Shown here: piece by piece, positions 12,805 through 61,118 of the stretch | Layout: the number at the start of each line of letters is the position of its first letter | Numbering within the stretch: the first letter of the stretch is position 1 | IMG/VR virus record: IMGVR_UViG_3300028654_000001 | Span: 186,001 to 250,000 of that record | DNA: 64,000 bases | Reading direction: 5' to 3' (one strand) | The notes under the pieces: model-generated | Seen by the model: only the letters and a program-made list of their open reading frames with translations | Database searches by the model: none | What the model was told of the DNA's origin: nothing | Translations under genes and position numbers: made by a program

Positions 12805-13557
12805 ATGCTAATTCTCGGAATAATGGCGATTATACTGGTACTAACCATCTGTGTATCCACCGTTGTTTATTTTCTTGGTAAATACCACAAGGCAAAGGAT
12901 GAGGCTGAGAAACAGAGGTTGAGAGCGGTATCCGCTGAGAATTCTGCTCGAGTGGCTGCTGGACAACGACCGATACCTGGGAGTGGGGTTGATGCTAGTG
13001 AATTAGCAGCTAGGTATAGAACACCTTCCCCACCTGAACCCCCTCCAAACAGAACTGAGTCAGGAAGAGTTTCAACCCGACCAAGGACACGGCCAAGATC
13101 TCGTCAAAGTATGGAGTCCTCTTTCACTGATCTATTCAGTAGCATGAGTGAGCAGATGACCCAAGTCTTTACTGGGGTGTCTCAAGCAGTGAGCGTGGTT
13201 AGTGAGCAAGCTACCCTCTCTGTAGCCATAGCTCGGGATGCTCAATCCCTATTGAATCTTGGGTTTGTTCAAGAAAATATTCAACTTGATCAAAGTCGGA
13301 GGTCTAACTTACAACACCTGAGTCTCATTCCTGGAGTATCCTCTCGAACGGTCACTGCACTACAGAGGCTTGAAACTTCGAATCGTATAGCTGAGCACCT
13401 TAACTGGGGGCGACTAGTAATCCAATTCATGCGTATGATTGACTCTGGTGGGATAACCTTCGAGAACGAGAACAAGGCTCCTGAACCAACTACTGCTAAG
13501 GAACCAGAGCCCGAGAAGCTACCTCCAACAAGGTTTGAGCGCGAGGATGTGATATGA
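12805..13557 (+). CDS. membrane-anchored hypothetical protein with C-terminal TRFER tag
   Basis: N-terminal TM helix; ends EKLPPTRFEREDVI; shares a domain (..NR..WG..MR..SG..) with the next gene. Confidence 0.8.
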   Translation: MLILGIMAIILVLTICVSTVVYFLGKYHKAKDEAEKQRLRAVSAENSARVAAGQRPIPGSGVDASELAARYRTPSPPEPPPNRTESGRVSTRPRTRPRSRQSMESSFTDLFSSMSEQMTQVFTGVSQAVSVVSEQATLSVAIARDAQSLLNLGFVQENIQLDQSRRSNLQHLSLIPGVSSRTVTALQRLETSNRIAEHLNWGRLVIQFMRMIDSGGITFENENKAPEPTTAKEPEPEKLPPTRFEREDVI

Positions 13558-14603
13558 GACCATTGTTTGATGGATGGGCCTTGCTCGCCTTCCTGTTCTG
13601 GATGGGTTTCTGCTGGCTCCTCTGCGTACGAAGATTGTTCTGGGGTTCCTTGGTAAGGAACTTCATCACAAGTGTCTTCTTTGCAATCTCTGGTATTGCA
13701 CTCCTCTTCCTAGCAACTAGGCCTTGGATTAACACGGCCCACATCCCTCATGGAGTCAACTTTCCGCCCCCGAAGTACAATAGTGAGATCCTAAATCTTG
13801 TAGGATCAATGTGCCTGACTCTATCCCTCGCCATCAGGGTAGTAATTCAACCGATCCCTACGCCATGCCCAAGAGTCTTGGTTTCGGATGAGAACATATC
13901 TCACCTTAGAGGTACTTGGCACATCATTGATGAGGTCAGGGTTCGAGTGGGGGACATCGTAATCCTTATAAATCAGAATCGAGCTGTAGATAACGGAGCT
14001 TGGGAAGTCAGAAAGCCACCCTGGCGCAGACCTCAATCAAATCAGAAGGGCTACCATTCCTTTGGTTCTTGGTTCATTGCTAATTGTGGTAACAAGTATG
14101 CTCATACTCTATGGGTGGGATCATTATGCCGCAATGACATCATCGGTGAGGGTGAACTCGAGTGGAAGCAACTCGATCTAAACAGCAGAATACGAACTTT
14201 CGTGAGCCTCGAGATACCCTGCAGTATTGGTGAGACCGCCAAGTTCCTTCTTCGAGTAGGAGTACTTCCATACCAGATTCGATGCAATCTCCAAGAAGAA
14301 GCAGTTAGGGACCTTTTGCAAGCAGGACACATATCACCAACCTCAGTAGGTATCCTACTGCACAAGCCTGACCCTAATCGGAACTCTACTGAGTGGGGTC
14401 CTCGAGTCAAAGCGGTGATGAGGTTGCTCATTCACTCGGGTGAGTTTGAATACCCCAAGGAAGCCTACGAGAGTGCAGTAACTAATGGGTTCGAGCACCG
14501 TATGACTGAGACTGAGGTGAGGGCTGACTTCGAGGTTCGAGTTAGGAACGAAACCCCAGAACCTCGAACCCCGACTAGGTTCGAAAGAGATGAAGTGATA
14601 TGA
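13554..14603 (+). CDS. multi-TM protein with tail-fibre-like domain and TRFER tag
   Basis: Three hydrophobic segments; VGDIVILINQNRAVDNGAW; ends PTRFERDEVI. Confidence 0.75.
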   Translation: MRPLFDGWALLAFLFWMGFCWLLCVRRLFWGSLVRNFITSVFFAISGIALLFLATRPWINTAHIPHGVNFPPPKYNSEILNLVGSMCLTLSLAIRVVIQPIPTPCPRVLVSDENISHLRGTWHIIDEVRVRVGDIVILINQNRAVDNGAWEVRKPPWRRPQSNQKGYHSFGSWFIANCGNKYAHTLWVGSLCRNDIIGEGELEWKQLDLNSRIRTFVSLEIPCSIGETAKFLLRVGVLPYQIRCNLQEEAVRDLLQAGHISPTSVGILLHKPDPNRNSTEWGPRVKAVMRLLIHSGEFEYPKEAYESAVTNGFEHRMTETEVRADFEVRVRNETPEPRTPTRFERDEVI

Positions 14604-14824
14604 GAGCCTCGAAGTCTGTACTTCAGGTTATGTTATTCCTGGTCATACTGCTATTGTTGTACTTGGAATTGCAACATGTTATTTTTAGGATCAACAAAAA
14701 GTCTGTAGCTACCACCACGGTACCGACTCCATCATCTGCCAAGGTAGTACCATGCGCTCCAAGTGCTACTGCTGATGTGAGAACCCAACATGAGGATAAA
14801 ACTAGCCTATCAGAAGATACCTGA
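14600..14824 (+). CDS. small single-pass membrane protein
   Basis: Hydrophobic VMLFLVILLLLYL; ATGA coupling. Confidence 0.6.
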   Translation: MRASKSVLQVMLFLVILLLLYLELQHVIFRINKKSVATTTVPTPSSAKVVPCAPSATADVRTQHEDKTSLSEDT

Positions 14825-15425
14825 TACCCACAACTGCCCGCTCAAGAAATGCATAGCCTTTGAGAAGTACGATGGTACCAACATCCATTGGGTTGCACAG
14901 CCCGAGTGGGGTTGGGTAGACTACGGTACTCGTCGCGATCGATTCCCCTTCAATAACGGTGGAGATCAGAAGTTTGAGGAGGCTCATCCAGAACTATCTG
15001 GGGTTTCTAGGTTGTGGGACCCAGATAGTAAGCTAGAGCATTATTTGAGGGGTAACTACAGCTCTGCCCAAGAGATTGTGGTGTTCACGGAGTACTTTGG
15101 CCCTAACTCGTTTGCTGGGATGCACAAGCCTGGTGACAAAATGCAGCTGGTCATCTTTGATGTCCAGATTGATGGCAACCTTCTCCAACCGGAAGAGTTT
15201 ATCACTGCCTTCAAGGGCTTCAACATCGCTCAGGTTGTCTTCAAGGGCAAGTACTCAGGACAGTTATTTGTTGATGTCCGTAAGGGCAAGTACGGCGTGA
15301 AAGAGGGTGTAGTCGTCAAAGGTGTAGCCGACGGTAATATCTATATGGCCAAAATCAAGACGAACGAGTATCTTGAACGTCTGAAGAGTAAGTTTGGAGA
15401 TTCCTGGCAAGAATATTGGGAGTAG
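14790..15425 (+). CDS. RNA ligase-like covalent nucleotidyltransferase
   Basis: Motif I EKYDGTN, EYFG, IFDV, motif IV EGVVVK, motif V AKIK. Confidence 0.8.
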   Translation: MRIKLAYQKIPDTHNCPLKKCIAFEKYDGTNIHWVAQPEWGWVDYGTRRDRFPFNNGGDQKFEEAHPELSGVSRLWDPDSKLEHYLRGNYSSAQEIVVFTEYFGPNSFAGMHKPGDKMQLVIFDVQIDGNLLQPEEFITAFKGFNIAQVVFKGKYSGQLFVDVRKGKYGVKEGVVVKGVADGNIYMAKIKTNEYLERLKSKFGDSWQEYWE

Positions 15426-15428
15426 GTT

Positions 15429-15779
15429 ATGCCAAAGAAAAGAGCAATTCTGGTTGGAACAGCAGAGCCGTTACCAAACCCACGCCCCCGGAAGAAGGTT
15501 AATCCAACTCCCCCAAGCCCCTTTGCCCCGGTACCTACCCTAGGCCCCTATGGCACCCGGGACAACCGGGAGAAGCTGATGTTATTCCTGCGAGGGTTCA
15601 AGGATGGGGCAGCAGCCACCGCCCACCGGCACCCAACAGAGTTGCCCTACCTAAAAGGGTACGAGGAAGGCTCAAGGGCACGGGCAGGGGCCGTACGAAT
15701 CTTCTGTGACGAGATTGGACACGACCCAATGCAAGACATCCTTCGGTGTAATACCGTGGATGCTACTGAGAATAGATGA
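15429..15779 (+). CDS. hypothetical protein
   Basis: 116-aa ORF directly after the ligase. Confidence 0.6.
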   Translation: MPKKRAILVGTAEPLPNPRPRKKVNPTPPSPFAPVPTLGPYGTRDNREKLMLFLRGFKDGAAATAHRHPTELPYLKGYEEGSRARAGAVRIFCDEIGHDPMQDILRCNTVDATENR

Positions 15780-16179
15780 TAACACCCTAGATCCGTCCGA
15801 GTTCAGAGATACTTTGGCCGTTCGGTTCGCACTTCCCCAGGAATGGGAGATGGAATCACGCGAGGGTATGGCTAGGTGTGGGGTTCTGTTGCGTGACGAA
15901 GTGAGCTTCCGAAGAAACACTTGGCTTCCGTTTGACATAACGGACATGTTTGAGGCCACTGTGTTCCTTCGTCAGGCTGCCCCAGAGGGGACTGATCGTA
16001 TCCAGTCCTGGGTTTACGAGGTCTACACTTGGTACCAGTCGCGGATGATGATCCCTTGGACGGTTACCTTGATCTACCACCCTGAAGGATGGCACTTCTG
16101 CTTTGGCCCTGCAGGACTCATCCAGGGCTTGAGGGTAATTCTTCCAGACTACATTCCACTATCGGGTCCTCAGACATAA
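15760..16179 (+). CDS. hypothetical protein
   Basis: Start set at 15760: GGTGTA 15745-15750 lies 9 nt upstream. Confidence 0.65.
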   Translation: MLLRIDDNTLDPSEFRDTLAVRFALPQEWEMESREGMARCGVLLRDEVSFRRNTWLPFDITDMFEATVFLRQAAPEGTDRIQSWVYEVYTWYQSRMMIPWTVTLIYHPEGWHFCFGPAGLIQGLRVILPDYIPLSGPQT

Positions 16180-16519
16180 CTCTCTGGAACCTGGTTTGGA
16201 CCCCACGTCGGCAATAAGCTGAGATTATCATGCTAGACATCTCATCTACGTGAGTTGCTCCGTGAACTTGCTCCATATGCTGAGCAAGTGGGGACCCAAG
16301 CCGGAGTCCCCACTTGTTGCGCAGGTACCTGCCCAAGGTATGGTGAAGCTCGGTCATTGCTGTCTTCTCGTTAGCCACACTGAGAAACAACCGAGTCTCC
16401 TCATTCAGCATACCATCAATTGCTTCAATTGCTTCATCAAGAGTAGTAGGATTAGGGTGCTCAATCCGAGTTGATGCGTGTAATGGGTAATCCTTGAGAG
16501 CCTTGTACTGAGGGATCAT
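16118..16519 (-). CDS. DUF6794-like protein with TRFQR tag variant
   Basis: HHTLGRYLRNKWGL..H.DEMS..II pattern; QTRFQRVM near the C-terminus. Confidence 0.65.
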   Translation of the reverse strand: MIPQYKALKDYPLHASTRIEHPNPTTLDEAIEAIDGMLNEETRLFLSVANEKTAMTELHHTLGRYLRNKWGLRLGSPLAQHMEQVHGATHVDEMSSMIISAYCRRGVQTRFQRVMSEDPIVECSLEELPSSPG

Positions 16520-18925: not shown

Positions 18926-19392
18926 TGCTTACAGTAGCTGACGTCATACCGACTGCAGAGGTTGGACAGTATTGGGTACATACCTTTCCCCTGTACATGT
19001 TTCGAGTTATAGCCGTTGATGTACAACAGTGGCAGTTCACCCTTGTCACTTGGATTGTCGGAGGGGTCCCTGAAGAGGATAGTTACTATATCGGGTATGA
19101 TACTTTTAAGGGATGCCGTAGACTTCACAACTCTGTAGTAATTGATCCCCATGCACTTAGCCTCAAGGAGATCCCTCGAACTGGAGACATTTTAGTTTTC
19201 CCAAGTGGGGAGTTGGTTTTCGTGGTTACCGATGGATCCCTAGTAACCCTGTACCATGATGGGGTTGTACCCAAAGACCCAGCTGTACTTTCCAAGCTTA
19301 AGCTATTTCAACGTGGCCCAGTCGACCCGAACCTAAAACCCACAACCAGATTCGAACGAGTGTTAGGTGATCATGCCCTTGACCCAGACTGA
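18922..19392 (+). CDS. hypothetical protein with TRFER tag
   Basis: Ends KPTTRFERVLGDHALDPD; paralogous to the next gene. Confidence 0.75.
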   Translation: MMLTVADVIPTAEVGQYWVHTFPLYMFRVIAVDVQQWQFTLVTWIVGGVPEEDSYYIGYDTFKGCRRLHNSVVIDPHALSLKEIPRTGDILVFPSGELVFVVTDGSLVTLYHDGVVPKDPAVLSKLKLFQRGPVDPNLKPTTRFERVLGDHALDPD

Positions 19393-19840
19393 TATATTCC
19401 CGGTGATGCAACCCGATCAGTGGTGGGCTCAAACCAGAACCCTTGGATTAGTACATATCTTGGCCATAGATCAACAGGTTGGCCCAGAGAGATGCTTTGA
19501 AATGGAGGTTTGGGCACCTGATGAACTACCTGGGAATAAGTGGCATTGGAATCGGGGACTTGGGCCTCCAAATGAATCACTCCTCTGGTTCAGGTCCAAG
19601 GTGGATGTCAAGCATCCAATTGAAAAGTATAGGATTGGAACGGTCTACATTTCAGCGGTGAACCACCAGCTATTCTTCTTAGCTATCATCCACGGAGAGG
19701 TTTGGATACTCGCCGATTGGGAGGTTACGGACACAGATCTTCAGAAGTCCTATGTGTTTCAACCAGCCCAGAAGGATCCAACTGAGTTGCATGACACTAG
19801 GTTGGAAAGGGTTCTGAACGAGGAGCACTCACCGACTTGA
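19367..19840 (+). CDS. hypothetical protein with TRLER tag
   Basis: LTQTDIFP..DQWW..LAID resembles the previous gene; ends DTRLERVLNEEHSPT. Confidence 0.75.
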   Translation: MIMPLTQTDIFPVMQPDQWWAQTRTLGLVHILAIDQQVGPERCFEMEVWAPDELPGNKWHWNRGLGPPNESLLWFRSKVDVKHPIEKYRIGTVYISAVNHQLFFLAIIHGEVWILADWEVTDTDLQKSYVFQPAQKDPTELHDTRLERVLNEEHSPT

Positions 19841-20082
19841 CACCTGTAGTTATAAGTGGTACTGCCACCTACATGGATATACCCCAAAGAGGCGTTCACC
19901 ACCTTCTCCACACGCTGTGGACAAAAGCCGTAGGTACTGAGAATTACAACAAGAATGAGTGGAAGCAGCTGGCTGCTTACCTGTATGCTCTTATGGCCGA
20001 CCCTATGGCTTCCCAGAATATCATTGAAGTCGACAGGATACTTCAACCACCGACGCGGTTCGAGCGGGAGCCGGTGATCTAA
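19837..20082 (+). CDS. small protein with TRFER tag
   Basis: LHTLWTKAVG..Y.K.EW core; ends PPTRFEREPVI. Confidence 0.7.
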   Translation: MTPVVISGTATYMDIPQRGVHHLLHTLWTKAVGTENYNKNEWKQLAAYLYALMADPMASQNIIEVDRILQPPTRFEREPVI

Positions 20083-24443: not shown

Positions 24444-24767
24444 TTAGGAGTTATTGATCCGATCAAACCGAGTAGGTGGCTTATCCGTATACATAGTGGA
24501 CTGCGTGGTCCTTGCCACGTCTACGGAGGGTGGCTCTTCCTCCTCAACCTCTTCCTCCTCCACCTCAGGTTCCACTTGGTTGATGATCATAGGTTGTTGC
24601 GCAAAATTTGCGAGTAAGGCTTTCCACCCAAGAAGAATGTGGTTGGAGATAGTAGCTAGCAGATTGTAGGTAGATCCAATAACAACAATCACTATAAATG
24701 TAGCTAATCCTGGGTTGGCATGAACCCATATCCAGACCTGACTCATCACGGGGACAGTATACCCCAA
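24444..24767 (-). CDS. small membrane protein with TRFDR tag
   Basis: TM segment, acidic linker, ends KPPTRFDRINNS. Confidence 0.7.
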   Translation of the reverse strand: MGYTVPVMSQVWIWVHANPGLATFIVIVVIGSTYNLLATISNHILLGWKALLANFAQQPMIINQVEPEVEEEEVEEEEPPSVDVARTTQSTMYTDKPPTRFDRINNS

Positions 24768-31185: not shown

Positions 31186-31434
31186 ATGAACCGGTTTACC
31201 CGAATCCTGAGTGAGAGTCACCTGCCCTATGATATGAGGCAAACAAGGATTGTCTACCTCAAGCTATACGATGATTGTAGGGTAGGGGACCCCGGAGTTA
31301 GAGATACACTCAACCCATGTGACTACTTCAAATATGGTACCGCCAGCGGTGATTGTGAATCCGATGGCCACTACATGTGCAAGGAATGTAAGTGTCTGAC
31401 ACCACTCAAGGCAGGGCGAGCACTTTCAGAGTAG
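31186..31434 (+). CDS. small Cys-rich protein with degenerate N-terminal tag (NRFTRIL)
   Basis: C..CESDGHYMCKEC; start taken at the internal Met. Confidence 0.55.
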   Translation: MNRFTRILSESHLPYDMRQTRIVYLKLYDDCRVGDPGVRDTLNPCDYFKYGTASGDCESDGHYMCKECKCLTPLKAGRALSE

Positions 31435-32668: not shown

Positions 32669-33076
32669 GTGGCTTCCCCTCTTTTCAACTCTCAGAATCG
32701 CCCTCGGGCGGCTTCCCACTTAGCCGAGATTGACTTCGGCCGACTGGAAAAGTCTCGTAAAGAGAGCGGGAACGTCATCATAACCTACGAGACTTGCCCG
32801 GGTATTTTCCTACTGGCCTATGAGCAGGTTCATAATAGGAGCATCACATTTGCTCCGTTCCCAGTACCGAAGTACTGGGAACGACATGTGACCAGGGTTC
32901 ACTTACTGGTACCCGCTCCAGGCTCAATCAATCTCAAGAATGGGTCCCAAGTTACAACTATACCGGAGGATAGTGTAGCCCATGTTCTAGGGGCCATCCA
33001 GTATGTGCTAGAACAAGGTGGGTTCCAGGTAGTACTAGGTGCTCCAACTCGATTTGAACGAGCCGACGTGATTTAG
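32669..33076 (+). CDS. hypothetical protein with TRFER tag
   Basis: Ends APTRFERADVI; GGTGTA 10 nt upstream. Confidence 0.75.
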   Translation: MASPLFNSQNRPRAASHLAEIDFGRLEKSRKESGNVIITYETCPGIFLLAYEQVHNRSITFAPFPVPKYWERHVTRVHLLVPAPGSINLKNGSQVTTIPEDSVAHVLGAIQYVLEQGGFQVVLGAPTRFERADVI

Positions 33077-34847: not shown

Positions 34848-35597
34848 ATGCCAGCTGGAGCCTTTTGGCGCCTTCAGTACAGAGATGGCCTAGATCACAG
34901 AATTCAAGCTCGGGCTGATAGGCAAAGGTTTGCCCAAGACAGGAACGTCCTCACAGCCATTACTCGCTACCACGAGGGCGCTTTCGTTCTGGAGGTTCAG
35001 CTTGTCGATGATGCGGAGTCTACCTTCGATGGGAGTCTTCACGAGCTCTACAATCGACAGCAGTCCATTCGAAACCCACCGCCAGTGACTAGGACCATCT
35101 CCTCCTTAGCTAGATGGGGAAACACACCTGATTCAAATGGGATGGTCATAGATCCCCAAGTCAGGGAGAACATCATCAGTCAGTACATCCAAAGCTCAGG
35201 GGGTCGTCAACGATTGGCCCAGGCGATGGTAGCCCCTCTCCGAACACGACTAGACTACTCGGGGATGGCAAGACGGGTATTCATGGTTGAACCTCTCCAA
35301 GGAGGGGCCTTGCCCACCTACGACAAGGACATGGTCAGTGACTTCAACCCGCCCGACTGGGTCGACGCTGGCACGTGGGTCAAGAGTGACGATAAATACG
35401 CGATTATTGTGGCCACCGAGCCGAAGAATACCGAAAGCCTACCCTTCAACTCGGCTATAGTTGAATACCAGGTCTGGAGGGATTACGGGCCTCCAAAGAG
35501 GCTTGACGCGGAAACCTTCTGTAAGTACTGGTTACCATCCGAGACTCCAGCAGAGCCTAGAACCCGATTCGAACGAATTCTGATGGACGATGATTGA
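34848..35597 (+). CDS. mosaic protein: capsid-like segment + PxW domain + TRFER tag
   Basis: IISQYI..GRQRLAQAMVAPLR.RLDY...RRVFMVEPL..GALPTYDKD; ends PRTRFERILMDDD. Confidence 0.75.
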   Translation: MPAGAFWRLQYRDGLDHRIQARADRQRFAQDRNVLTAITRYHEGAFVLEVQLVDDAESTFDGSLHELYNRQQSIRNPPPVTRTISSLARWGNTPDSNGMVIDPQVRENIISQYIQSSGGRQRLAQAMVAPLRTRLDYSGMARRVFMVEPLQGGALPTYDKDMVSDFNPPDWVDAGTWVKSDDKYAIIVATEPKNTESLPFNSAIVEYQVWRDYGPPKRLDAETFCKYWLPSETPAEPRTRFERILMDDD

Positions 35598-38302: not shown

Positions 38303-38734
38303 ATGGCAACACCCTACTGCCCACAGCCGACGGATCAACCGGTGGACCCTAGCACACTACCGTGGATTCTGAACTTGAATGACATGAGATTCTCGCATGT
38401 TGAGGAGTTAGTATTTGTATGCTGGGCTAATACTATAGAAGAATTGAAGGAATTCGTCAATCGGGAAACCGTTGAGTACTACAAGGATGATAAGTGGGGG
38501 AAAACATTCAGAAAATACGGACCCATTGAGTGGTTTAATCGACCCTGGGACTATGATGAGAGCAAGCACTTTCTGCAAGTACCACCAACCTTAATTGCAT
38601 ACGGAGTCATGGAGTACCGAAACCCGATAGTTGTGAACCTCCCGAGTATCCAAGACCTGGTTTCTAGAGCTCAGTATGAAAACCCACAACCGGCTACGCG
38701 GCTCGAACGAATAGCCTTCAATATGGTGGAATAA
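38303..38734 (+). CDS. hypothetical protein with TRLER tag
   Basis: LNLNDMR..W.KTFRK.GP.EWFN.P; ends PATRLERIAFNMVE. Confidence 0.75.
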   Translation: MATPYCPQPTDQPVDPSTLPWILNLNDMRFSHVEELVFVCWANTIEELKEFVNRETVEYYKDDKWGKTFRKYGPIEWFNRPWDYDESKHFLQVPPTLIAYGVMEYRNPIVVNLPSIQDLVSRAQYENPQPATRLERIAFNMVE

Positions 38735-38735
38735 T

Positions 38736-39611
38736 ATGCCACTTCCAGATTGGGCTATCCTTGGATCCGTTATCTACCCACGGCCGCGTGATTCATATAT
38801 TAGAATCATAAGGGAATCTGGGGCTATCATAGTATATGCACTTCGAGAAGAGGTGCAGTTGAATCAGAACCATGTGGTATTCAGCGTAGACTCTGAAACT
38901 CTAGAGCATAACTGGATGCCACTTTCAGAAGCTGCACCCTTGTTTTCTGACTCAACTTATGGGCCAATGCCCTCCTGGTTTACAATTGGCTCGCGAATTA
39001 TTCAAAACCACAACAATCTGACTTACATAATCCTCTCTTTTGACCCTATCCGCTGGTCAATGACTGCAACATTAGAAGACGAAGTGAGTCCAACCAACTT
39101 CACGGTGACAAACTTCATTAGACATTGGAGACCCGCTAGCTCAATCACAGAGCAGAAACCCACTACGAATGTCACTAATATCGTTCAAGGTAGGGTTCAA
39201 GTTGCCCCAGATTGGTTGTATCCGGGGAAGTTCCTTAGAAGGAAAGTGAATCCAAATCACGTGTTTGTGGTCTCAAGCCTAGACCCAAGACGTTTCGTTG
39301 CAGTACTGACTAGACTGGATAGCCTAAGGCCGATGGTTCTTGGATCGATCTTTGAAGAAGCTGATTATTGCCGTATCGATGAACAGTTCACTCAAGTCGA
39401 CAGTACAGGGAGCCCAGCAGCTGAGTATACGTGCAAGAAGTGCGGTGAAACCGGCGAGAGAGACTACGACGCTGAGGAGAGACGAGCCAGCATCGACACT
39501 GTTAGGGCTTATACCTGCAAGAGGGGTCACACCTGGTACTTCGTGGCGGGTACCGATCAAGATGGTAAGCCAGCCAATCCAAGTAGATTTGAGCGTGATA
39601 TCGGCATTTAG
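38736..39611 (+). CDS. triple PxW-domain protein with Zn ribbon and SRFER tag
   Basis: LPDW/MPSW/APDW repeats, CKKC..CKRGH, ends PSRFERDIGI. Confidence 0.8.
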   Translation: MPLPDWAILGSVIYPRPRDSYIRIIRESGAIIVYALREEVQLNQNHVVFSVDSETLEHNWMPLSEAAPLFSDSTYGPMPSWFTIGSRIIQNHNNLTYIILSFDPIRWSMTATLEDEVSPTNFTVTNFIRHWRPASSITEQKPTTNVTNIVQGRVQVAPDWLYPGKFLRRKVNPNHVFVVSSLDPRRFVAVLTRLDSLRPMVLGSIFEEADYCRIDEQFTQVDSTGSPAAEYTCKKCGETGERDYDAEERRASIDTVRAYTCKRGHTWYFVAGTDQDGKPANPSRFERDIGI

Positions 39612-39653
39612 TAGTATTCTTTTTATAGTTTTGGTGTAGTGTTCACTGCCATT

Positions 39654-40838
39654 ATGCAAAAGAAGCCGATTGTGAAGTCCACACCGAACAAGAAACCTAG
39701 CTGGTGGAACGCCCTTAACCTAGAATCACTAGATAGGTACAGTGATATGGCCCGGATGGTCATAGATCACGCTGTAACATCCGGAAAAACGGTATTCTCT
39801 GGGAATTGTAAGGGCAACCTGGAAGATGCTGATCAGGAAGACGCTTTCGAAGCTTTCGTTCAGGCATTGGTAGACGGCATTCAGGGTTACGTCAGCTTCA
39901 CCCATGCTCCTCCATTCGGCCGTGGGGCACTTGAAACTTGGGTGCTATGGGAAGGTGGATCGATTACCATCAAAATGGGTCTTGACAAAAAGGTCATGGT
40001 CAGTGTTGTAGCCCTTGGTTCCGAGGATTATGCAAATATTGCAGGGATTCTTGGTGGGTACCTGATTCCAGATAATGTCCGTCAACCGGTATACTCCCTG
40101 GCTAACGGAAATAATGGGATCGAAATCATGGAAGTCGGTCTAGCAGGAGAGTATCTAGAACGAGAGAACTACGTGCAGGAAGTTCTCGACGGTTTCGAGT
40201 ACATCATTGAGGAGATCAGAAGAGAGAGTCCAATCGGTCGTCTATCCATTATCTATGGGGATCCTGGTAGCGGGAAAACATACTTGATTCGTGGAATTAT
40301 CAACGAAATTCCAGATGCTATCTTCGTCCTAGTACCCTGCCACCTCGTTGAAGACTTGGCTGGCCCTCAACTGGTACCTATGTTGATTAGGGCGAGAAGC
40401 TTAGCAGGTACCAATAACCCCATTGTCCTGATTATCGAAGACGCGGACAGGGCCCTAGTACCTAGAGAAGAAGGTTCCCTGGCGGCTATCTCCTCTTTGT
40501 TGAATGTATCGGATGGTATCCTTGGCCGTACCCTAAATCTCAGGGTAATCTGTACAACCAATGCAAAGTTGGAGGATATCGATCCAGCCTTAAAACGGGC
40601 AGGTCGTCTATCTGTACAACTCAACATCGGACTTCTACCACTTGAAAAGTGTCAGGAGATCTACAGTAGACTCATGGACGGAGCTGAAGCATTATTCAGC
40701 GAACCCTTACCACTAGCTGAGATCTACCGATTTGTGAGTACCGAAAAGTTCGCCGACTCCGACGAGGACACTGACGAGAGTGAGGACGATGATGACGAGG
40801 ACGATGATGACGAGGACGATGATGATGACGAGGAATAA
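39654..40838 (+). CDS. AAA+ ATPase with poly-Asp/Glu tail
   Basis: GDPGSGKT, IIEDAD, LLN.SDG, TTN, DPALKRAGR; GGTGTA upstream. Confidence 0.9.
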   Translation: MQKKPIVKSTPNKKPSWWNALNLESLDRYSDMARMVIDHAVTSGKTVFSGNCKGNLEDADQEDAFEAFVQALVDGIQGYVSFTHAPPFGRGALETWVLWEGGSITIKMGLDKKVMVSVVALGSEDYANIAGILGGYLIPDNVRQPVYSLANGNNGIEIMEVGLAGEYLERENYVQEVLDGFEYIIEEIRRESPIGRLSIIYGDPGSGKTYLIRGIINEIPDAIFVLVPCHLVEDLAGPQLVPMLIRARSLAGTNNPIVLIIEDADRALVPREEGSLAAISSLLNVSDGILGRTLNLRVICTTNAKLEDIDPALKRAGRLSVQLNIGLLPLEKCQEIYSRLMDGAEALFSEPLPLAEIYRFVSTEKFADSDEDTDESEDDDDEDDDDEDDDDDEE

Positions 40839-41142: not shown

Positions 41143-41718
41143 GTGGGTTGTTCACTCCTCTTTAGAAGAGCAATACTAGTTGAGGTAGCCCCTTGGTTAC
41201 ACAGTAGTTGCCAGCTTGTGGTTGCTTATGGCGGTGGTCAAATCACTGTCCATAGGTATGACCCCTACAGCATGATTGAAGAGGATTCCAGGATAGTAGG
41301 GAGATCTATCAACCTCCCTATTCGTCACTACTACTACGTTGACACTACAGAACAGGGGTACTACTTCTATGTTGACATTCAGGGTAACATACTCGAGTTC
41401 GATAACTCAACGTTTTTTGACTTAGCTCGAATGAGCAATGACCCAAGTCTAGGGTATGGTCACGAACCGATAATAGGAGTCCTTAGATCAAACCCTGTTA
41501 GGCCAACGAGGTTCGAGCGAATCCTTAGAGAGAATGAAATCTGGGAAGATTACCGCCCCACCCCAAAGCCAATCCAAGAAACCAGGAAAACTGAAGTCAC
41601 TGAAGCTGATCTAGCAGCTATCTTCAACAAGCCCCAAAAGTTGATTGCAGATGCTCCTAAACCCATGGACATTGATATCCTCAAGTGCATGGAAGAGGTA
41701 TTAGGTAAGACCTCTTAG
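41143..41718 (+). CDS. hypothetical protein with internal TRFER tag
   Basis: PVRPTRFERILRE. Confidence 0.7.
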   Translation: MGCSLLFRRAILVEVAPWLHSSCQLVVAYGGGQITVHRYDPYSMIEEDSRIVGRSINLPIRHYYYVDTTEQGYYFYVDIQGNILEFDNSTFFDLARMSNDPSLGYGHEPIIGVLRSNPVRPTRFERILRENEIWEDYRPTPKPIQETRKTEVTEADLAAIFNKPQKLIADAPKPMDIDILKCMEEVLGKTS

Positions 41719-41734: not shown

Positions 41735-42670
41735 ATGTTGTTCAGATTAGATAACCCACGCTTCATTATGAATGCGCAGGAATTTCCTGCGAATGTGGTT
41801 TTCTATTGCCTGGCTTACCAGGATTGCACAGGAGATCTGATTGTAAACTACACTGAACCGTCTACCTCCAGACGAGTAACTGACTCTATTACTCCAACTA
41901 GGAGTCTTCCTATATTCCCTGGGATGACCGTTCACGAGTATGTAGCCCCCTTCACTGACTTACATGACAATCTAGGAAGGCGCGGATCCACTATCGGATT
42001 CAACTTCGTGGCTCGGAGTTCATTCAGGGCCGCGGGGGCTAATTACGGTGTCAGAACCCTGGACATCATAATGATCTTCCCTGTCATTGGCGGGGGGATC
42101 ATCAGAATTCAAGCTGGTGGACAGGATTGGGATGTAGCCAACCCAACGTTTGACCCTCATGCTCCAGTACCGGGTCTTAGCACCCGATATGACGGCTCTG
42201 GAAGAATGGACGAATATGTCAGTGGGCCAGCTGGTATCGACAATCGAAGAGTCCCAGACGATGTCATGATTAATGCATACCAGAGGTCCCACCGCGGGTA
42301 TGTAGGGAACACAGATGAGATTGAACGTCGAAGGACTGCACGGTTGGCCAACTTTGACCTACAAGAGGTCACCGAAGAGCAACGGATACAAGAGGCTCAG
42401 ACTCCTCCACAAGAAGCTGGACCGCGGATAGCCTTGTCAGCTACCGAGATTCGAAGACAGGAACGGCTAGCTCAGATTCAGGCCGCTGAAGCTCGACAAT
42501 TAGGTCAGTTAGCAAACCCACTGACACCGGCGGTATCCGGACTGATACTCGGGAATGAACCACGCCCACAACGTGAAGTTAATCTAGTCATGCCGGTAGA
42601 ACGAGCTCCTAAGGCTCCCCCAAAGACTAGGCTCGAGAGAGCTGCAGCCGATGATGAAGATGAAGATTGA
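41735..42670 (+). CDS. hypothetical protein with TRLER tag
   Basis: Ends PPKTRLERAAADDEDED; GGTGTA 11 nt upstream. Confidence 0.8.
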   Translation: MLFRLDNPRFIMNAQEFPANVVFYCLAYQDCTGDLIVNYTEPSTSRRVTDSITPTRSLPIFPGMTVHEYVAPFTDLHDNLGRRGSTIGFNFVARSSFRAAGANYGVRTLDIIMIFPVIGGGIIRIQAGGQDWDVANPTFDPHAPVPGLSTRYDGSGRMDEYVSGPAGIDNRRVPDDVMINAYQRSHRGYVGNTDEIERRRTARLANFDLQEVTEEQRIQEAQTPPQEAGPRIALSATEIRRQERLAQIQAAEARQLGQLANPLTPAVSGLILGNEPRPQREVNLVMPVERAPKAPPKTRLERAAADDEDED

Positions 42671-43245: not shown

Positions 43246-43773
43246 TCAAGTCTGGTGAGGGTTTTCATCTTGGGTAACCCTCTCAAATATTGTAAAATGA
43301 ATCCTAGGGGCCTGTGGTCCCCTTAGGGTCAAAAGTTGATTAAGGCTTTCAGTTAGGTGGTTAATTCCATCTACTAGCCCTCTGCGCTCCTCATTATTAA
43401 CTATCAAACCCCTACGGATAACATCTTCAGCTTCTCTGAAAATGTTGACCGCCCTTAGGTTACTCTGCACTTCGATCACATTTCCGAGTAGGGCACTGTA
43501 GCTAGACCCAACATAAGCAGGAAGACACTCGATGTCACCTACACATTCTTTACACTCTTCATCACCCCTATTCTCAAAGTAATCAATGATTACTTGAGGG
43601 GTTGGAGCTTTCAAAGTCGAGTGGAAGTAGAGCTTCAAAAACTCGAATATTCTATAATCAGCCGGCCGATCCCACTCAATGTTTGAACTCAAAAGTTCCA
43701 GGATGTTCGCTATCAGGTCCTCTTGAGAGGGGCTCCCAAAGTCGATAACTGAACGGAGCGCTCTTCTTGGCAT
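43246..43773 (-). CDS. hypothetical helical protein with degenerate tag (TIFERV)
   Basis: GGTGTA 10 nt upstream; tentative resemblance to a phage helicase N-terminal region. Confidence 0.7.
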   Translation of the reverse strand: MPRRALRSVIDFGSPSQEDLIANILELLSSNIEWDRPADYRIFEFLKLYFHSTLKAPTPQVIIDYFENRGDEECKECVGDIECLPAYVGSSYSALLGNVIEVQSNLRAVNIFREAEDVIRRGLIVNNEERRGLVDGINHLTESLNQLLTLRGPQAPRIHFTIFERVTQDENPHQT

Positions 43774-46087: not shown

Positions 46088-46382
46088 TAAGCCTCTGACT
46101 GAACGTGACTATGAGGTCCTTGGTGAACTCGTGCATCAGTCCAAGGACGGTGAGTGGTTGCGCCCAATGGATGTAGGTGGTTTTGACGGATCTCACCACT
46201 CAGCTACCCTGAACAATCTTGTCAGCCACGGTATGGCTGAACTAACGTGGTTCGGAAAACCTTGGCAGCCTCGCTTACACAAAAGGTACAGGGTAACCAA
46301 AAATGGAGAAGCTCTGTACCAAGAGTACAAGTTGAAGAAGCAAGCGGCTAGATCAGATCCTCTTCATCTAGTAAAGCGTTGA
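46080..46382 (+). CDS. putative winged-helix protein
   Basis: RPMDVGG...SHHS.TL..LV..G..YRVT..G. Confidence 0.65.
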   Translation: MGNKPLTERDYEVLGELVHQSKDGEWLRPMDVGGFDGSHHSATLNNLVSHGMAELTWFGKPWQPRLHKRYRVTKNGEALYQEYKLKKQAARSDPLHLVKR

Positions 46383-46842
46383 TTCTATCAAAGCGAGTGG
46401 GTTGAACACTTGGGTTAACCCCATTAAATAGTGGGGTTTGGGTTCCTAGATTAGAGAAAACCCATCGAACTGGAGTACTCGGGTTTACCAGGATAGAGGT
46501 GCCAAATACGATGAAAGTAACCTCAAAGTTTACCCTCAGGATCTCTAGAACGAGATTGTCCCAACCTTTACCCTCTTTAATTATGGTAAAGTCAAAGGCA
46601 AAGGCGGTCCCTCTTTTTGAGTCTAGATATGAACGAGCCTCATACTCACCTGGTGCATAGATTCTAATCGGTTTTGATTCCTTGATACCACTTACGCGCC
46701 ACTTGCGGGTGGGGTTGCGATCAACCCTGACGATAGATGGAGTCCAGGTCGGTTCAGGCCCTCTCCCTAATATGATCTGTGGAGTGTTCCACTTGATCTT
46801 ATCAACCCAGACATCTGGACGGGATAGGTCAATTTGAATCAA
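46348..46842 (-). CDS. hypothetical protein with TRFDR tag
   Basis: Ends QPTRFDRINALLDEEDLI. Confidence 0.75.
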   Translation of the reverse strand: MIQIDLSRPDVWVDKIKWNTPQIILGRGPEPTWTPSIVRVDRNPTRKWRVSGIKESKPIRIYAPGEYEARSYLDSKRGTAFAFDFTIIKEGKGWDNLVLEILRVNFEVTFIVFGTSILVNPSTPVRWVFSNLGTQTPLFNGVNPSVQPTRFDRINALLDEEDLI

Positions 46843-54282: not shown

Positions 54283-55326
54283 TCAGCTTCCTGCTGCTAC
54301 GAGTTTAGGTTCAGCATTCTTCCTCAAAAGACTGCAAAAAGAACCTGGTACCTCAAATGGCCTGAAGGTAGGCTTCCCGACGAGGCTCTTGAGCAGGTTG
54401 TCAAAAGCCTCGTGAACATCATCTGCCTTGGAGGGCCTCATTCTTCTCTCTGGGTTCAGACAGATCTTGAGTAGGTTTTGGATCTCTCGGGGTACCGCAT
54501 CAGGCATCTCGTTGGTTTTAACGTCTCCGCCGAGAATAGCAACCATACACTTGACGGCCATATAGATGTCGGTCGCTTCCGAAGCTTCCTTTTTTTCTGG
54601 TACCTCAGGCGGGTAGTAGTCAGCATACCTAGTGATGAGTACGCGAATTCTGGTCATACCAGAGTAGATTGAATCAGCGGGATCAGGCTCGCCAACGGGT
54701 CTACTCCCATGAGGAGTGTCCTCTAGTGCCCGCTCTCTAGTAGAGGCCGAGTAGCACCAATCGATGAGCTTGGCGCCGTGGTTCTGACCAAACAACAGGA
54801 TGTGAGGGGGGAGAACTGCCCCATGCAGGAAACCATTCTTGTGCGCCCACCATAGGCCAACCAGGGTTCTCTTGAACATCCAAGCCATGTCCCGATAGTC
54901 AATCCCTTTTGGGTAGGCTCTAAGAACATCATCAATGGTGAAGTAGTCGGGTATCAATGAAAGGATGTTCCCCCTCTGTCCCCGAGAGTCAAACCCTCCG
55001 TAGCTAGTTGGATAGTAGAGGTTGAACTTGGACCAATCCGGATCCGTTGATGTTAGTCCATTCAGGACTTGGCTCTCCCTGATCAATAAATCGTTGTTAC
55101 TTGGATCCGAGCAGATCCTAACGATGACCGGAACCTCAACCACATCATCATCGTCATCCTCTAGAATGTGATCAAAGCGAGTCCGAGGCCCTGCGTGCTT
55201 GACAGGAGTTTTTGGAGCTGGGTTCTCATCCTTGTAAGTCCCCTGGTAAAGGTTGCAGAGATCACCCTCCATCAACCGAGCCCCAAACGTCACGCTCTTC
55301 TTGTCACCAAGAGCTAGCGTCGGCAT
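54283..55326 (-). CDS. atypical Ser/Thr kinase-like protein with an inserted TRFDH tag
   Basis: N.DL..RE, AWMFKR.L..L..AH..G.LHGAVLPPHIL, LIDWCYS, YPPE, DIYM. Confidence 0.8.
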   Translation of the reverse strand: MPTLALGDKKSVTFGARLMEGDLCNLYQGTYKDENPAPKTPVKHAGPRTRFDHILEDDDDDVVEVPVIVRICSDPSNNDLLIRESQVLNGLTSTDPDWSKFNLYYPTSYGGFDSRGQRGNILSLIPDYFTIDDVLRAYPKGIDYRDMAWMFKRTLVGLWWAHKNGFLHGAVLPPHILLFGQNHGAKLIDWCYSASTRERALEDTPHGSRPVGEPDPADSIYSGMTRIRVLITRYADYYPPEVPEKKEASEATDIYMAVKCMVAILGGDVKTNEMPDAVPREIQNLLKICLNPERRMRPSKADDVHEAFDNLLKSLVGKPTFRPFEVPGSFCSLLRKNAEPKLVAAGS

Positions 55327-56693: not shown

Positions 56694-56726
56694 GGAATTT
56701 CACCGAAGTGCTTCAAATAAATGAGC

Positions 56727-56761: not shown

Positions 56762-56775
56762 TTATGTTATGCAAA

Positions 56776-57744: not shown

Positions 57745-57800
57745 GAGAGACCTCTACTTTCCTTCATGTTTACTGTTAGAACAACTCGTTGTGGTCTGAT

Positions 57801-58046
57801 CTAATCTTCATCGTCTCTAAGAATCCGATCGAACCGAGTACTCCCAAGAAGCGTTGTACTCGGTTTACTAGACACCGATGGCACTTCATCGGTGTCTAGA
57901 ATTCGATCGAATCGAGTTGGTCGAGAAGTACTTTGGGTATCTGGTACTTGACTCCGAATAGGCTCTACACCCGCTTGACTTTTAGGCTCTTGTTTTCTAC
58001 GAGACATAAGAGTGTAGAAGTCATCTGTCCAAAAACCGCCGCCCAT
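57801..58046 (-). CDS. mini-protein: copy of the vWA N-terminus + two TRFDR tags
   Basis: MGGGFWTDDFY vs MGGGSWSHDFY; PTRFDRIL and STRFDRIL. Confidence 0.8.
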   Translation of the reverse strand: MGGGFWTDDFYTLMSRRKQEPKSQAGVEPIRSQVPDTQSTSRPTRFDRILDTDEVPSVSSKPSTTLLGSTRFDRILRDDED

Positions 58047-58053
58047 AAGCCTC

Positions 58054-59442: not shown

Positions 59443-59451
59443 CTTGTCCTC

Positions 59452-60183: not shown

Positions 60184-60524
60184 TTGTCAATCCCCAGAAA
60201 CTTCTTAGTAATTGATGCAGCCTCAACCATTGGAATCTTTCTGTGTGAAACGGTTCTGTTGAGCTTTGGCCTGAAGTACACGATGCAGGCCATCTCTAGC
60301 AGGTCTAAGTCAGCCTCTGGGTCAACTCTTCGTATGAAGATCTGATCGAATTCCTTTGACTTATGCCTGACTATAGCTGAATGAACGCTAATTGATTGAC
60401 CTATATACATCAACTCCCCTAATAGGAATAGAAAATAAATCACAGAGGTTCTATACACCTCGACTTCTTCAAGGAGTTTTGCCTCAACCTCCTCGGTTAC
60501 TACCTTCCGTATGATCTTGGCCAT
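60180..60524 (-). CDS. GIY-YIG-like small protein
   Basis: VIYFL..MYIGQS..H..E..I..P.LN. Confidence 0.6.
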   Translation of the reverse strand: MAKIIRKVVTEEVEAKLLEEVEVYRTSVIYFLFLLGELMYIGQSISVHSAIVRHKSKEFDQIFIRRVDPEADLDLLEMACIVYFRPKLNRTVSHRKIPMVEAASITKKFLGIDK

Positions 60525-60538
60525 CCGTGGTCGGATAC

Positions 60539-60559
60539 TTATAGTAGAAGTGACAATAA
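60539..60559. promoter_or_regulatory. candidate NrtR operator
   Basis: TTATAGT-N7-ACAATAA imperfect palindrome (GT-N7-AC core) just upstream of the nrtR-nadV operon. Confidence 0.65.
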
Positions 60560-60656
60560 GTCAAGGTAGAAAAGAATATTTCTGTAACCAGTTGTAATCA
60601 TTACGGTTAACCAAATGACTCTCACATTTTTGACATACTTGGTGTAAAGGTGCCAA

Positions 60657-61118
60657 ATGCCAGTGCAAAGGCGAGGGCGTGCGGTTGACTTTGTAAAGGA
60701 AATCCTGAACCACGAGCACAGAGACTGGGTTCGATCCGATGACCCAAGCACTTCCAGTTGGGGCTTCGAGTGTCGGATTTGCAAATCCCGCTACCTAATA
60801 GCCATCGAAGCCTTCCGATACCAAGGGGGCGACCGCTACTCGAATGCTCTCCGAGATTGTGCAATGGATCCGAGAAAGGATCCATTGGAGACAGTTCTTG
60901 GGTTCGATTGTATCGCCTGTCATACGACTGAGGGCGTCAAACTGGAACCTTCAAGAACTCAATATGGTACAACGTATCCTCGAACGAGGTTCGAACGAAT
61001 ACTTGACCCTGAGCCAGAAGATCCTAACATCGACATCCCTCTCTGCCGAAGTTGCGCAGAGGATCATCATTCGTACTGGGATGAAATGTGGCAGATGGTT
61101 CGATATGATCAGATGTGA
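60657..61118 (+). CDS. Zn-finger protein with internal TRFER tag
   Basis: CRIC, CIAC, CRSC..H; YPRTRFERIL; GGTGTA 10 nt upstream. Confidence 0.75.
   Translation: MPVQRRGRAVDFVKEILNHEHRDWVRSDDPSTSSWGFECRICKSRYLIAIEAFRYQGGDRYSNALRDCAMDPRKDPLETVLGFDCIACHTTEGVKLEPSRTQYGTTYPRTRFERILDPEPEDPNIDIPLCRSCAEDHHSYWDEMWQMVRYDQM

Follow-up and report, generated by a model that had tools for sequence, protein, structure and literature searches.

A short peptide tag shared by mostly unrelated proteins in a stretch of a megaphage genome

In the current study, we asked why about one in five proteins in a stretch of a 512-kb phage genome, otherwise unrelated to each other, carry the same short peptide (P-T-R-F-E-R plus a short tail), usually at their very end. 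The stretch, termed the window here, comprises 64,000 nt of the record IMGVR_UViG_3300028654_000001 (positions 186,001 to 250,000). An initial annotation, made from the sequence alone, had listed 23 occurrences in 21 ORFs and proposed that the peptide docks many accessory proteins onto one partner. The listed observation was confirmed in full. The motif [TS]R[FL][EDQH][RH] occurs 23 times in the coding frame of 21 of about 99 genes, and the coordinates given in the annotation differ from ours only in pointing to the preceding Pro or, on the minus strand, to the low coordinate. The other five frames hold only 3 matches, which is at chance level. Per-protein shuffles of our 99 gene calls (19,456 aa), a comparison the annotation had set as a test, gave a mean of 0.32 loose matches (maximum 3 in 2000 shuffles) against 23 observed, and for strict TRF[ED]R the mean was 0.02 against 14 observed. 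As claimed, 17 of the 23 copies lie within 25 residues of the stop, and 7 lie exactly 4 residues before it. Both of the described flavours exist, namely TRFER-xx-[VG]I-stop (flavour 1) and TRF[ED]R-[IV]L followed by acidic residues (flavour 2), and composite tails such as ...REGVI also occur. Pro is 2.6-fold enriched in the 20 residues before the tag, in keeping with the Pro-rich linker that had been noted. Likewise, the enzymes recognised by Pfam in the window lack the tag, including OMP decarboxylase, thymidine kinase, the CCA-adding enzyme, NAMPT, adenylosuccinate synthetase and cytidylyltransferases.

When the carriers were examined individually, flavour 1 was found on six proteins. It occurs at 13528..13557 (+) (PP-TRFER-EDVI-stop) on the 250-aa protein 12805-13557, which has an N-terminal hydrophobic segment, and at 14574..14603 (+) (TP-TRFER-DEVI-stop) on the 349-aa protein 13554-14603, which has three N-terminal hydrophobic segments and weak "virion structural / head decoration" PHROG hits. 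It is also present at 20053..20082 (+) (PP-TRFER-EPVI-stop) on the 81-aa protein 19837-20082, at 33047..33076 (+) (AP-TRFER-ADVI-stop) on 32669-33076, at 36294..36323 (-) (PP-TRFER-EDVI-stop) on 36294-36680, whose last 14 residues are identical to those of 12805-13557 but are encoded by different codons, and at 39582..39611 (+) (NP-SRFER-DIGI-stop) on the Cys-rich 291-aa protein 38736-39611. Flavour 2 occurs at 16118..16195 (-) (TRFQR-VMSED..., 20 aa before the stop) just after the DUF6794 domain of 16118-16519, at 35562..35597 (+) (PR-TRFER-ILMDDD-stop) on 34848-35597, and at 37704..37754 (+) (RR-TRFER-ILDDTDELYPL-stop) on 36714-37754.

Other terminal or near-terminal copies lie at 19345..19392 (+) (PT-TRFER-VLGD..., 10 aa before the stop) on 18922-19392, at 19796..19840 (+) (TRLER-VLNEE..., 9 aa before the stop) on 19367-19840, a weak paralog of 18922-19392, and at 24444..24473 (-) (PP-TRFDR-INNS-stop) on the 107-aa protein 24444-24767, which has one hydrophobic segment and whose tail is invariant in orthologs while the linker diverges. 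Further copies are a composite tag at 35893..35931 (+) (TRLHR-VLREGVI-stop) on 35590-35931, and tags at 38696..38734 (+) (PA-TRLER-IAFNMVE-stop) on 38264-38734, at 42626..42670 (+) (PK-TRLER-AAADDEDED-stop) on 41735-42670 and at 46348..46398 (-) (QP-TRFDR-INALLDEEDLI-stop) on 46348-46842. Two tags (RP-TRFDR-ILDTDE and GS-TRFDR-ILRDDED-stop) lie within 57801..57917 (-) on the 81-aa, low-complexity protein 57801-58046, a possible bivalent ligand or competitor. The remaining copies are N-terminal or internal: two N-terminal copies within 38210..38278 (-) (TRFDH at residue 5 and SRFDR at residue 23) on 37751-38290, an internal tag at 41506..41520 (+) (RP-TRFER-ILRENE, 65 aa before the stop) on 41143-41718, an N-terminal-region tag at 55168..55182 (-) (PR-TRFDH-ILEDDDDD at residue 49) ahead of the kinase domain of 54283-55326, and an internal tag at 60984..60998 (+) (PR-TRFER-ILDPEPED, 39 aa before the stop) between Cys clusters of 60657-61118. 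The two degenerate copies that had been noted are also real. NRFTR-IL at 31189..31203 (+) sits near the N-terminus of 31150-31434, and its ortholog in L110, a relative, has a canonical TRFDR-ILSED, while TIFER-VTQDE... at 43279..43293 (-) lies 10 residues before the stop of 43246-43773 (-).

Several lines of evidence indicate that the peptide itself is under selection. All four Thr codons, all six Arg codons, both Phe codons and both Glu codons are used, and every position uses several synonymous codons, so selection acts on the peptide and not on the DNA. Once the tag is masked, the carriers in the window share no similarity by BLAST, except for one weak pair. In orthologs from related contigs, the five-residue core is 91% identical and the tail 72%, against 59% for the 20 residues upstream and 61.5% for the protein body. 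Of 131 in-frame hits in 325 kb of clade DNA, 125 lie within 25 aa of a stop and 79 are exactly 4 aa from it. Among 173 distinct tagged tails, the core is nearly invariant and Pro occupies position -1 in 117.

The distribution of the tag is narrow. Degenerate DNA patterns for both flavours, scanned over 2.9 million viral contigs, hit only one clade of huge phages, and a profile search of 1.84 billion representatives gave 9 significant hits, all ending at a C-terminus. In 185,579 reference genomes, the only clustered hits are two P4-like islands in one deltaproteobacterial MAG (MFD01476.bin.3.99), in which five tagged genes share only the tag with the phage. A further island-like fragment is also tagged. 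No published description of such a tag was found.

Two of the carriers have an additional history, in that they are remnants of an HK97-fold capsid protein. Residues 99-161 of 34848-35597 are homologous to the N-arm (residues 10-72) of a 299-aa HK97-fold capsid protein. The protein 36714-37754 holds a circularly permuted capsid-protein P-domain, with residues 209-254 matching capsid residues 253-299 and residues 255-304 matching capsid residues ~94-145, and has no A-domain. Neither these remnants nor the tagged bacterial islands had been anticipated by the initial annotation. Ten of the 13 genes in 34.8-42.7 kb are tagged, and inside this densest cluster, in conserved synteny with tagged genes, lies an untagged AAA ATPase at 39639..40838 (+) (AAA2), a candidate reader or loader with a clade-specific N-domain and a poly-acidic C-tail. 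The AAA2 N-domain has only 11 homologs in 5.8 billion proteins, all on contigs of this phage group.

What, then, does the tag do? The proposal of the initial annotation is partly supported. Its core idea, that a short linear motif grafted onto unrelated accessory proteins addresses them to something shared, is supported by the synonymous codon variation, the lack of paralogy among carriers, the conservation of the core relative to its linker, the restriction to one clade and the Pro-rich linker. However, no partner was identified, and docking onto one partner remains an inference. Of the partners that had been listed, an FHA-type (phospho-Thr) binder is disfavoured, because position 1 is S in about 10% of copies and S, G, D or N in distant relatives (AAA2 43-49% identical) that keep the tag. 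Acceptance of S, T, N, D and G at this position, with Pro before it and Glu at +3, is instead a helix N-cap signature. A PDZ-type binder can only fit the strictly C-terminal flavour. As for an AAA unfoldase or protease, neither AAA ATPase in the window shows an aromatic pore loop, and no protease domain accompanies them. A virion-loading or compartment reading fits best, as an inference from sequence alone.

We therefore favor a short linear docking motif of 9-12 residues, placed at the end of a flexible, Pro-rich linker, which would fold into a short helix upon binding one common receptor. In this model, Pro sits at N', Thr/Ser at the N-cap, and the pair T-x-x-E forms a capping box; two Arg and one Phe are taken as invariant; and the core is followed either by a hydrophobic pair and acidic residues or by two acidic residues and a terminal V-I carboxylate "hook". 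The helical hydrophobic moment of flavour 2 is 0.65. Because about 45-60 unrelated proteins per genome carry the tag, we read it as a sorting or cargo-loading signal rather than a regulatory contact. Peptide-level selection, independence from protein family, terminal position, clade restriction, presence in the islands and the capsid-protein ancestry of two carriers are shown by our analyses; the helical binding mode, the existence of a single receptor and the destination are inferred. An addressing or docking motif for a shared receptor is in our view very likely, while loading into a phage-built structure, most likely the procapsid interior or else a conserved module of AAA ATPase and capsid remnants, is a tentative suggestion that we hold at less than even confidence. 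The capsid ancestry of two carriers and the weak head-decoration hits of a third point in this direction, and loading may be helped by the conserved module of a Bcs1-like AAA ATPase and capsid-protein remnants. In contrast, no receptor was found, the head module of this phage was not located, and tagged genes sit among accessory, early-looking genes and not in a structural block. About 50 different cargo proteins would be many for a phage head, the N-terminal and internal tags (31150, 37751, 54283, 41143 and 60657) would not be needed by a strictly terminal loading peptide, and three carriers have hydrophobic N-termini. Moreover, 726 kb from other huge phages with the same capsid-protein family carry no tags, AAA ATPases of the same fold occur in jumbo phages in which no such tag has been reported, and the island proteins look like small DNA-binding regulators next to a primase rather than head proteins. 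The AlphaFold2 model of the carrier 36714-37754 was too poor (pLDDT 41) to show any docking in cis.

A close precedent is the C-terminal helix-and-hook (RIIK) motif shared by the phage 80alpha scaffolding protein and the SaPI1 satellite protein CpmB, which binds the N-arm of an HK97-fold capsid protein (PMC5644958). Both are short motifs at the extreme C-terminus with basic and hydrophobic residues, the amphipathic helix and hook of 80alpha is the form we infer here, both are shared between a phage and a genetic element that may parasitise it, and the present phage keeps a tagged N-arm remnant. However, the sequences differ (TRFER vs. RIIK), the 80alpha motif is carried by one scaffold and one satellite protein whereas this tag is on dozens of unrelated proteins far from any head module, and capsid binding is only an analogy in the present case. 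Encapsulin cargo-loading peptides (PMC11866011; PMC8229669) are likewise terminal and modular. Such peptides follow a flexible linker and suffice to address unrelated cargo to the inside of an HK97-fold shell, independent of protein family. No intact encapsulin or shell gene lies next to the carriers, though, the consensus differs from the Gly/Ser/Leu-rich loading peptides, and encapsulins usually load one to a few cargo types compared to about 50 proteins marked here. The T4 capsid targeting sequence of internal proteins and the disordered N-terminal cargo signals of PVC/eCIS particles, which need the AAA ATPase Pvc15, also load diverse, often host-directed proteins into a phage or phage-like particle via a short shared peptide. 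Those signals are N-terminal, that of T4 is cleaved off by the prohead protease, and they show no sequence similarity to the tag, the comparison being one without particle data for this phage. In eukaryotes, PTS1 (SKL-COOH, read by Pex5) and the SLiMs that bind the p97 N-domain (VIM, VBM, SHP) are very short terminal or disordered motifs on many unrelated proteins that are read by one receptor, with classical-clade AAA ATPases working in the same pathway; the organisms and sequences are different, and no TPR, PUB or UBX-like reader was found in the window. Finally, Bcs1, a heptameric AAA ATPase that moves a folded protein across a membrane (PMC10567702; PMC12219900), is the best structural match of the AlphaFold2 model of AAA2 over its whole length (N-domain plus AAA, 375-405 aligned columns), and like Bcs1, AAA2 shows no obvious aromatic pore loop. 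TM-scores are only about 0.4, p97 N-D1 scores nearly as well, and AAA2 has no transmembrane helix and no Pfam BCS1_N hit.

Among alternative explanations, the one that survives best, although we consider it unlikely, is that the tag docks onto a host protein or machine, such as a chaperone, protease, polymerase, replisome part or membrane complex, which both the phage and other mobile elements of the same host exploit, so that the host factor is recruited to each carrier or each carrier to the host factor. The two P4-like islands, which are integrated in a bacterial chromosome, share nothing but the tag with the phage and carry no homolog of the AAA2 N-domain, and the tag is conserved across phage relatives whose G+C ranges from 46% to 58%. 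Carriers include a kinase, a RecA-like ATPase, Zn-ribbon proteins and probable DNA-binding proteins, which could each need access to one host hub, and the two-tag 81-aa protein could act as a competitor. However, the flavour-1 pattern occurs nowhere in the MAG outside the two islands, so no native host ligands of this kind are evident. Fifty different proteins competing for one site on a host protein is unusual, unless that protein is a processing machine, the islands could be satellites that are active only alongside the phage, and the host is only inferred.

Less likely still, the tag might glue together one multi-protein assembly, as a self-association or complementation element derived from the capsid protein. 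It would bind the A-domain-less remnants (34848-35597 and 36714-37754) and build with AAA2 a phage-specific scaffold, condensate or nanocompartment, which other tagged proteins would join as clients. The remnants keep exactly the N-arm and P-domain, the parts that bind scaffold or cargo peptides in 80alpha and in encapsulins, and are conserved with AAA2 in synteny down to 41-49% identity. In the alignment, the tag of 36714-37754 falls under the capsid segment LRVARVYMNARD, which shares the pattern R-hydrophobic-x-R-hydrophobic-hydrophobic, but this may be forced by the aligner. The remnants themselves carry tags, there is no evidence that they assemble, and this hypothesis overlaps with the favored one rather than excluding it.

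A degron, read by a phage or host AAA+ machine so that a class of accessory or early proteins is removed or remodelled at a set time in infection, is also unlikely but not excluded. Flavour 1 sits at a fixed distance from a free, non-polar C-terminus (V-I), as in C-terminal degrons of the ssrA type, two classical-clade AAA ATPases whose best sequence matches among solved structures are p97/Cdc48 lie in the window, a papain-like protease is encoded at 29548-30561, and the carriers are accessory proteins, not housekeeping enzymes. In contrast, flavour 2 ends in acidic residues, some copies are internal or N-terminal, neither AAA protein shows an aromatic-hydrophobic-Gly pore loop or is joined to a protease domain, and the second AAA ATPase of the window (AAA1) is missing from two relatives that keep the tags. 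Marking about 10% of the proteome and the proteins of an integrated island for destruction also seems costly. Lastly, a mobile DNA element, a promoter or terminator overlapping gene ends, or one expanded paralog family can be rejected, since, although many copies lie at gene ends next to the following gene and some clusters of small tagged genes in relatives do look like local families (e.g., the Cys-containing 60-100-aa proteins in the relatives L098 and L085), the codon usage, reading frame, lack of similarity among masked carriers in the window and identical tails encoded by different DNA all speak against it.

Taken at its present strength, the tag looks like a protein address label of a kind not described for phages. 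If the favored destination is correct, tagged proteins would be packed into the procapsid and delivered with the DNA, and on this reading the P4-like islands in the presumed host use the same code as pirates.

The 64-kb window (positions 186,001-250,000) belongs to a 512,571-bp viral contig, IMGVR_UViG_3300028654_000001, also named Ga0265322_10000002, and the same genome was assembled independently as a 512,069-bp contig. G+C content of the window is 48.6% and about 92% of it is coding under the bacterial code. No close relative was found among deposited phage genomes when the GenBank phage collection was searched by DNA or by protein. Recognizable genes are mostly for nucleotide, NAD and tRNA metabolism, whereas most of the others are orphans. 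Among the former is an NAD salvage cluster on the minus strand (53139-60183) comprising NAMPT (58054-59442), a Nudix/NrtR-like protein (59452-60183) and a protein with a cytidylyltransferase-like, possibly NMNAT, domain (53139-54278). These genes lie beside adenylosuccinate synthetase (55314-56693), and the arrangement resembles phage NAD-reconstitution pathways. The minus strand also encodes a 2H phosphoesterase (43783-44343) that matches the Pfam family Acb1, an anti-CBASS protein, at about 25 bits, just below the family cut-off, and that is conserved in three relatives (L110, L111, and L112). Two paralogous small proteins are encoded at 9511-9858 and 10056-10250 (minus strand), the longer of which has a response-regulator receiver domain by Pfam, an unusual cargo for a phage. 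In addition, a 657-aa protein (24807-26780) has a ParB-like N-terminal region (judged by eye and without a Pfam hit), a very long acidic Pro-rich middle and a Cys cluster near the end, and is 61-68% identical in relatives. A J-domain protein is encoded just outside the window.

A six-frame search of the window for [TS]R[FL][EDQH][RH] returned 26 matches, of which 23 lie in the frame of 21 of our 99 gene calls and only three in other frames. Composition does not account for this number, since shuffling each protein 2000 times gave a mean of 0.32 matches with a maximum of 3, and for the strict form TRF[ED]R a mean of 0.02 against 14 observed. Seventeen copies lie within 25 residues of the stop. 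The initial annotation had also described two flavors of tail and two degenerate copies, both of which were found as described, and its observation is confirmed in full. The motif is not a DNA-level repeat, mobile element or regulatory DNA motif, because synonymous codons vary at every position: all four Thr codons, all six Arg codons, both Phe codons and both Glu codons are used, and two identical 14-residue tails are written in different DNA. Nor do the carriers form a single paralogous family, as an all-against-all BLASTP comparison with the tag masked gave one weak pair (18922/19367) and nothing else. Taken together, these results indicate that the motif is selected as a peptide and was acquired by unrelated proteins. 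A recurring GGTGTA[AC]T-like sequence, possibly a phage promoter or leader element, was seen in intergenic regions about 10-20 nt upstream of many start codons (for example, before 33035-33598, 34378, 44403, 31406-31951, 62246-63493, and 60657), but it occurs before both tagged and untagged genes and does not separate the two.

Conservation among relatives points in the same direction. Relatives about 67% identical keep the tag while the linker changes; for example, the tail TRFDR-INNS is invariant behind three unrelated linkers. Over 38 ortholog pairs, the five core residues are 91% identical, the tail 72%, the preceding 20 residues 59% and the rest of the protein 61.5%. In 325 kb of clade DNA there are 131 in-frame hits, 125 of which lie within 25 residues of a stop and 79 exactly four residues from it. 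Among 173 distinct tagged tails the core is almost invariant, i.e., T (S), R, F (L), E (D/Q/H), R (K/H), and Pro precedes it in 117 of them. Together with a 2.6-fold enrichment of Pro upstream of the tag and the lack of relatedness among carriers, these features fit a short linear motif in a disordered region.

The tag is narrowly distributed. A degenerate DNA pattern for P-TRFER-xx-VI-stop (flavor 1) found 35 stretches in 2.9 million viral contigs, all of them in ten contigs of one clade from five metagenomes, and a pattern for flavor 2 (TRF[ED]R-[IV]L followed by acidic residues) found six stretches, all in the same clade. A profile search of the tag against 1.84 billion proteins gave only nine significant hits, all from the clade, although 10 residues carry too little information for such a search. 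The 512-kb genome has 13 matches to the flavor 1 pattern, all between about 17 and 318 kb, and 45 tags of any flavor in the 27% of the genome that was examined, a fraction biased toward tagged regions. From these data we estimate 45-60 tagged proteins per genome. More distant relatives, in which the AAA ATPase encoded at 39639-40838 (AAA2) is only 43-49% identical and G+C content is 55-58%, still tag the orthologous and other proteins, but mostly with Ser at position 1, and also with Gly or Asp. A 4,951-bp contig binned with a Candidatus Omnitrophota MAG (JBAYMG010000053.1) is identical in name and content to a metagenome contig carrying a tagged gene of the phage clade, and is probably a mis-binned phage fragment.

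Outside the phage, the pattern gave eight stretches in one genome per species for 185,579 species, which is within the chance expectation. However, two of these stand out, since both occur in one MAG labeled "uncultured delta proteobacterium MFD01476.bin.3.99", with three and two tagged genes close together. Both lie in integrated, P4-like islands of lower G+C content inside ordinary chromosomal context, and their small early-operon proteins end in the phage's tag. One island (CAWEUH010000027, about 149.6-153.4 kb) has a VapE-type primase-helicase, while the other (CAWEUH010000040, from tRNA-Leu at locus position 7674 onwards) abuts tRNA-Leu and has a P4 cII-like gene; one of the two also carries FRG and Ymh-like genes. 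The island proteins share nothing with the phage but the tag, and a related tagged fragment occurs in another metagenome. Consequently, either the reader of the tag is a host protein, or these islands are satellites that copy the phage's code. A precedent for the second case is the 80alpha/SaPI1 pair, in which the phage scaffold and the satellite protein CpmB share a C-terminal helix-and-hook that binds the capsid protein N-arm (PMC5644958). A helper relation between the islands and this phage would be an inference by analogy.

The residues accepted at each position allow the shape of the tag to be inferred. Position 1 accepts T, S and, rarely, N, D or G, Pro is usual just before it, and Glu (or D/Q) lies three residues after it, which is the classical helix N-cap and capping-box pattern. 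As a helix, flavor 2 is strongly amphipathic (moment 0.65), with F, I and L on one face, whereas flavor 1 is less so (0.30) and ends in a V-I carboxylate at a fixed distance from the core. Composite tails (TRFER-IL-x-DD-IL-stop) suggest two determinants, a core helix and a terminal hydrophobic hook. In contrast, a phosphothreonine site read by an FHA domain (pT-x-x-D/E/I/L) is rejected, because threonine is not obligatory: Ser occurs in 12 tails against 125 with Thr and exchanges with Thr in orthologs, and distant relatives have mostly S, and also G, D or N. With regard to a PDZ-type or ssrA-type signal, in which the free C-terminal carboxylate takes part, flavor 1 always lies exactly four residues from the stop (103 of 173 distinct tails), while flavor 2 ends 5-20 residues later, often in acidic residues, and five copies in the window are internal or N-terminal.

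Few carriers have any family match. Those found were DUF6794, a protein kinase and, elsewhere in the genome, a RecA-like P-loop protein. Others are Cys-rich or Zn-ribbon-like proteins, three have hydrophobic N-termini, and one 81-residue low-complexity protein is little more than two tags. Two carriers, neither of which gave a Pfam hit, are pieces of a 299-aa HK97-fold capsid protein that survives here as two separate, conserved genes. Residues 99-161 of 34848-35597 match the N-arm (residues 10-72) of the capsid protein with 98% probability. The second, 36714-37754, holds the last 47 residues of the capsid protein followed directly by its residues ~94-145, i.e., a circularly permuted P-domain with the A-domain replaced by a Pro linker and the tag. 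An AlphaFold2 model of this tagged remnant family, built to see whether the tag docks in cis, was too poor to be informative (pLDDT 41). The family is the capsid protein of at least 440 viral contigs, many of 240-620 kb, but the tag is not a general property of phages that possess it, as no tag was found in a head module with the same capsid-protein family in another phage or in 726 kb of flanks from 80 related loci. The phage's own full-length capsid gene and head module were not located in the 27% of the contig examined.

Two classical-clade AAA ATPases in the window were considered as candidate readers. AAA1 (26804-28042) is missing from two relatives that keep the tags (007264 and 013511) and was therefore rejected as the universal reader. 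One of two HNH-type homing endonuclease genes (10429-11442 and 28341-29567, minus strand), the second, lies next to AAA1, and together with the absence of AAA1 from two relatives this suggests local gene flux there. In contrast, AAA2 lies inside the densest cluster, where 10 of the 13 genes in 34.8-42.7 kb are tagged, and is syntenic with the capsid remnants even in the most distant relatives. AAA2 always ends in a 25-40-residue poly-Asp/Glu tail, and its clade-specific alpha/beta N-domain has only 11 homologs among 5.8 billion proteins, all on contigs of this phage group. Its AlphaFold2 model (pLDDT 70) matches Bcs1, a translocase of folded proteins, best over its full length, but with a TM-score of only about 0.4 and with p97 N-D1 close behind; no transmembrane segment and no BCS1_N Pfam hit were found. 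AAA ATPases of similar fold are common in jumbo phages and giant viruses. This evidence is one of association only, and does not show binding.

Like encapsulin cargo-loading peptides, the tag is a terminal peptide after a flexible linker on otherwise unrelated proteins. However, only a split capsid remnant without an A-domain, rather than an intact encapsulin shell gene, is present, and the consensus is unrelated to known loading peptides. The tag also departs from a scaffold/CpmB-type capsid-docking C-terminus, in which the carrier is a scaffolding or size-determination protein encoded beside the capsid gene, since its carriers are diverse and lie among accessory genes.

Keeping this in mind, the tag is real, strongly selected, modular and confined to one group of huge phages plus island elements of a probable host, and these points rest directly on the analysis. 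The helical shape, any binding to AAA2, a capsid N-arm or another receptor, and the destination of the carriers are inferred. The interpretation in the initial annotation was thus partly supported, in that its central inference of a docking or address motif is well supported while a partner and purpose have yet to be established. We tentatively favor a sorting or loading signal into a phage-built structure, although this falls short of an even chance. A hub on a host protein is a less likely alternative, and an assembly built around the capsid remnants is more doubtful still. A degron is the least likely of these, as no aromatic-hydrophobic-Gly loop was seen by eye between Walker A and B in either AAA protein, neither has a peptidase domain, and AAA1 is absent from two tag-bearing relatives, even though a 337-aa protein with a papain-family cysteine protease domain (Peptidase_C1, E 6e-13) is encoded at 29548-30561 (minus strand) and has a homolog in the distant relative L112.

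A more far-reaching, although unlikely, possibility is that a huge phage runs its own protein-addressing code. In this view, a 9-12-residue helix-and-hook label would route roughly a tenth of the proteome, including a kinase, a RecA-like ATPase, membrane proteins and Zn-ribbon proteins, into a phage-built container or assembly. A clade-specific Bcs1-like AAA ATPase and a capsid protein stripped down to its peptide-binding N-arm and P-domain would read and load the label, and satellite-like islands in the host would have copied it to smuggle in their own proteins.

Terminal targeting peptides are known for encapsulins, for single scaffold proteins and for a few injected phage proteins. In contrast, a proteome-wide label is not known to us in a phage, and literature searches on the TRFER motif and on motifs of huge phages found no prior description. 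If the label is a loading or sorting signal, it gives a direct handle on an open question about huge phages, as it would show what their hundreds of orphan genes do together and whether these phages sort proteins into a particle or compartment. In practical terms, it is a sequence rule that picks out a functional class of orphan proteins, a candidate portable tag for loading foreign proteins, and a possible marker linking these uncultured phages, satellite-like islands and a host lineage.
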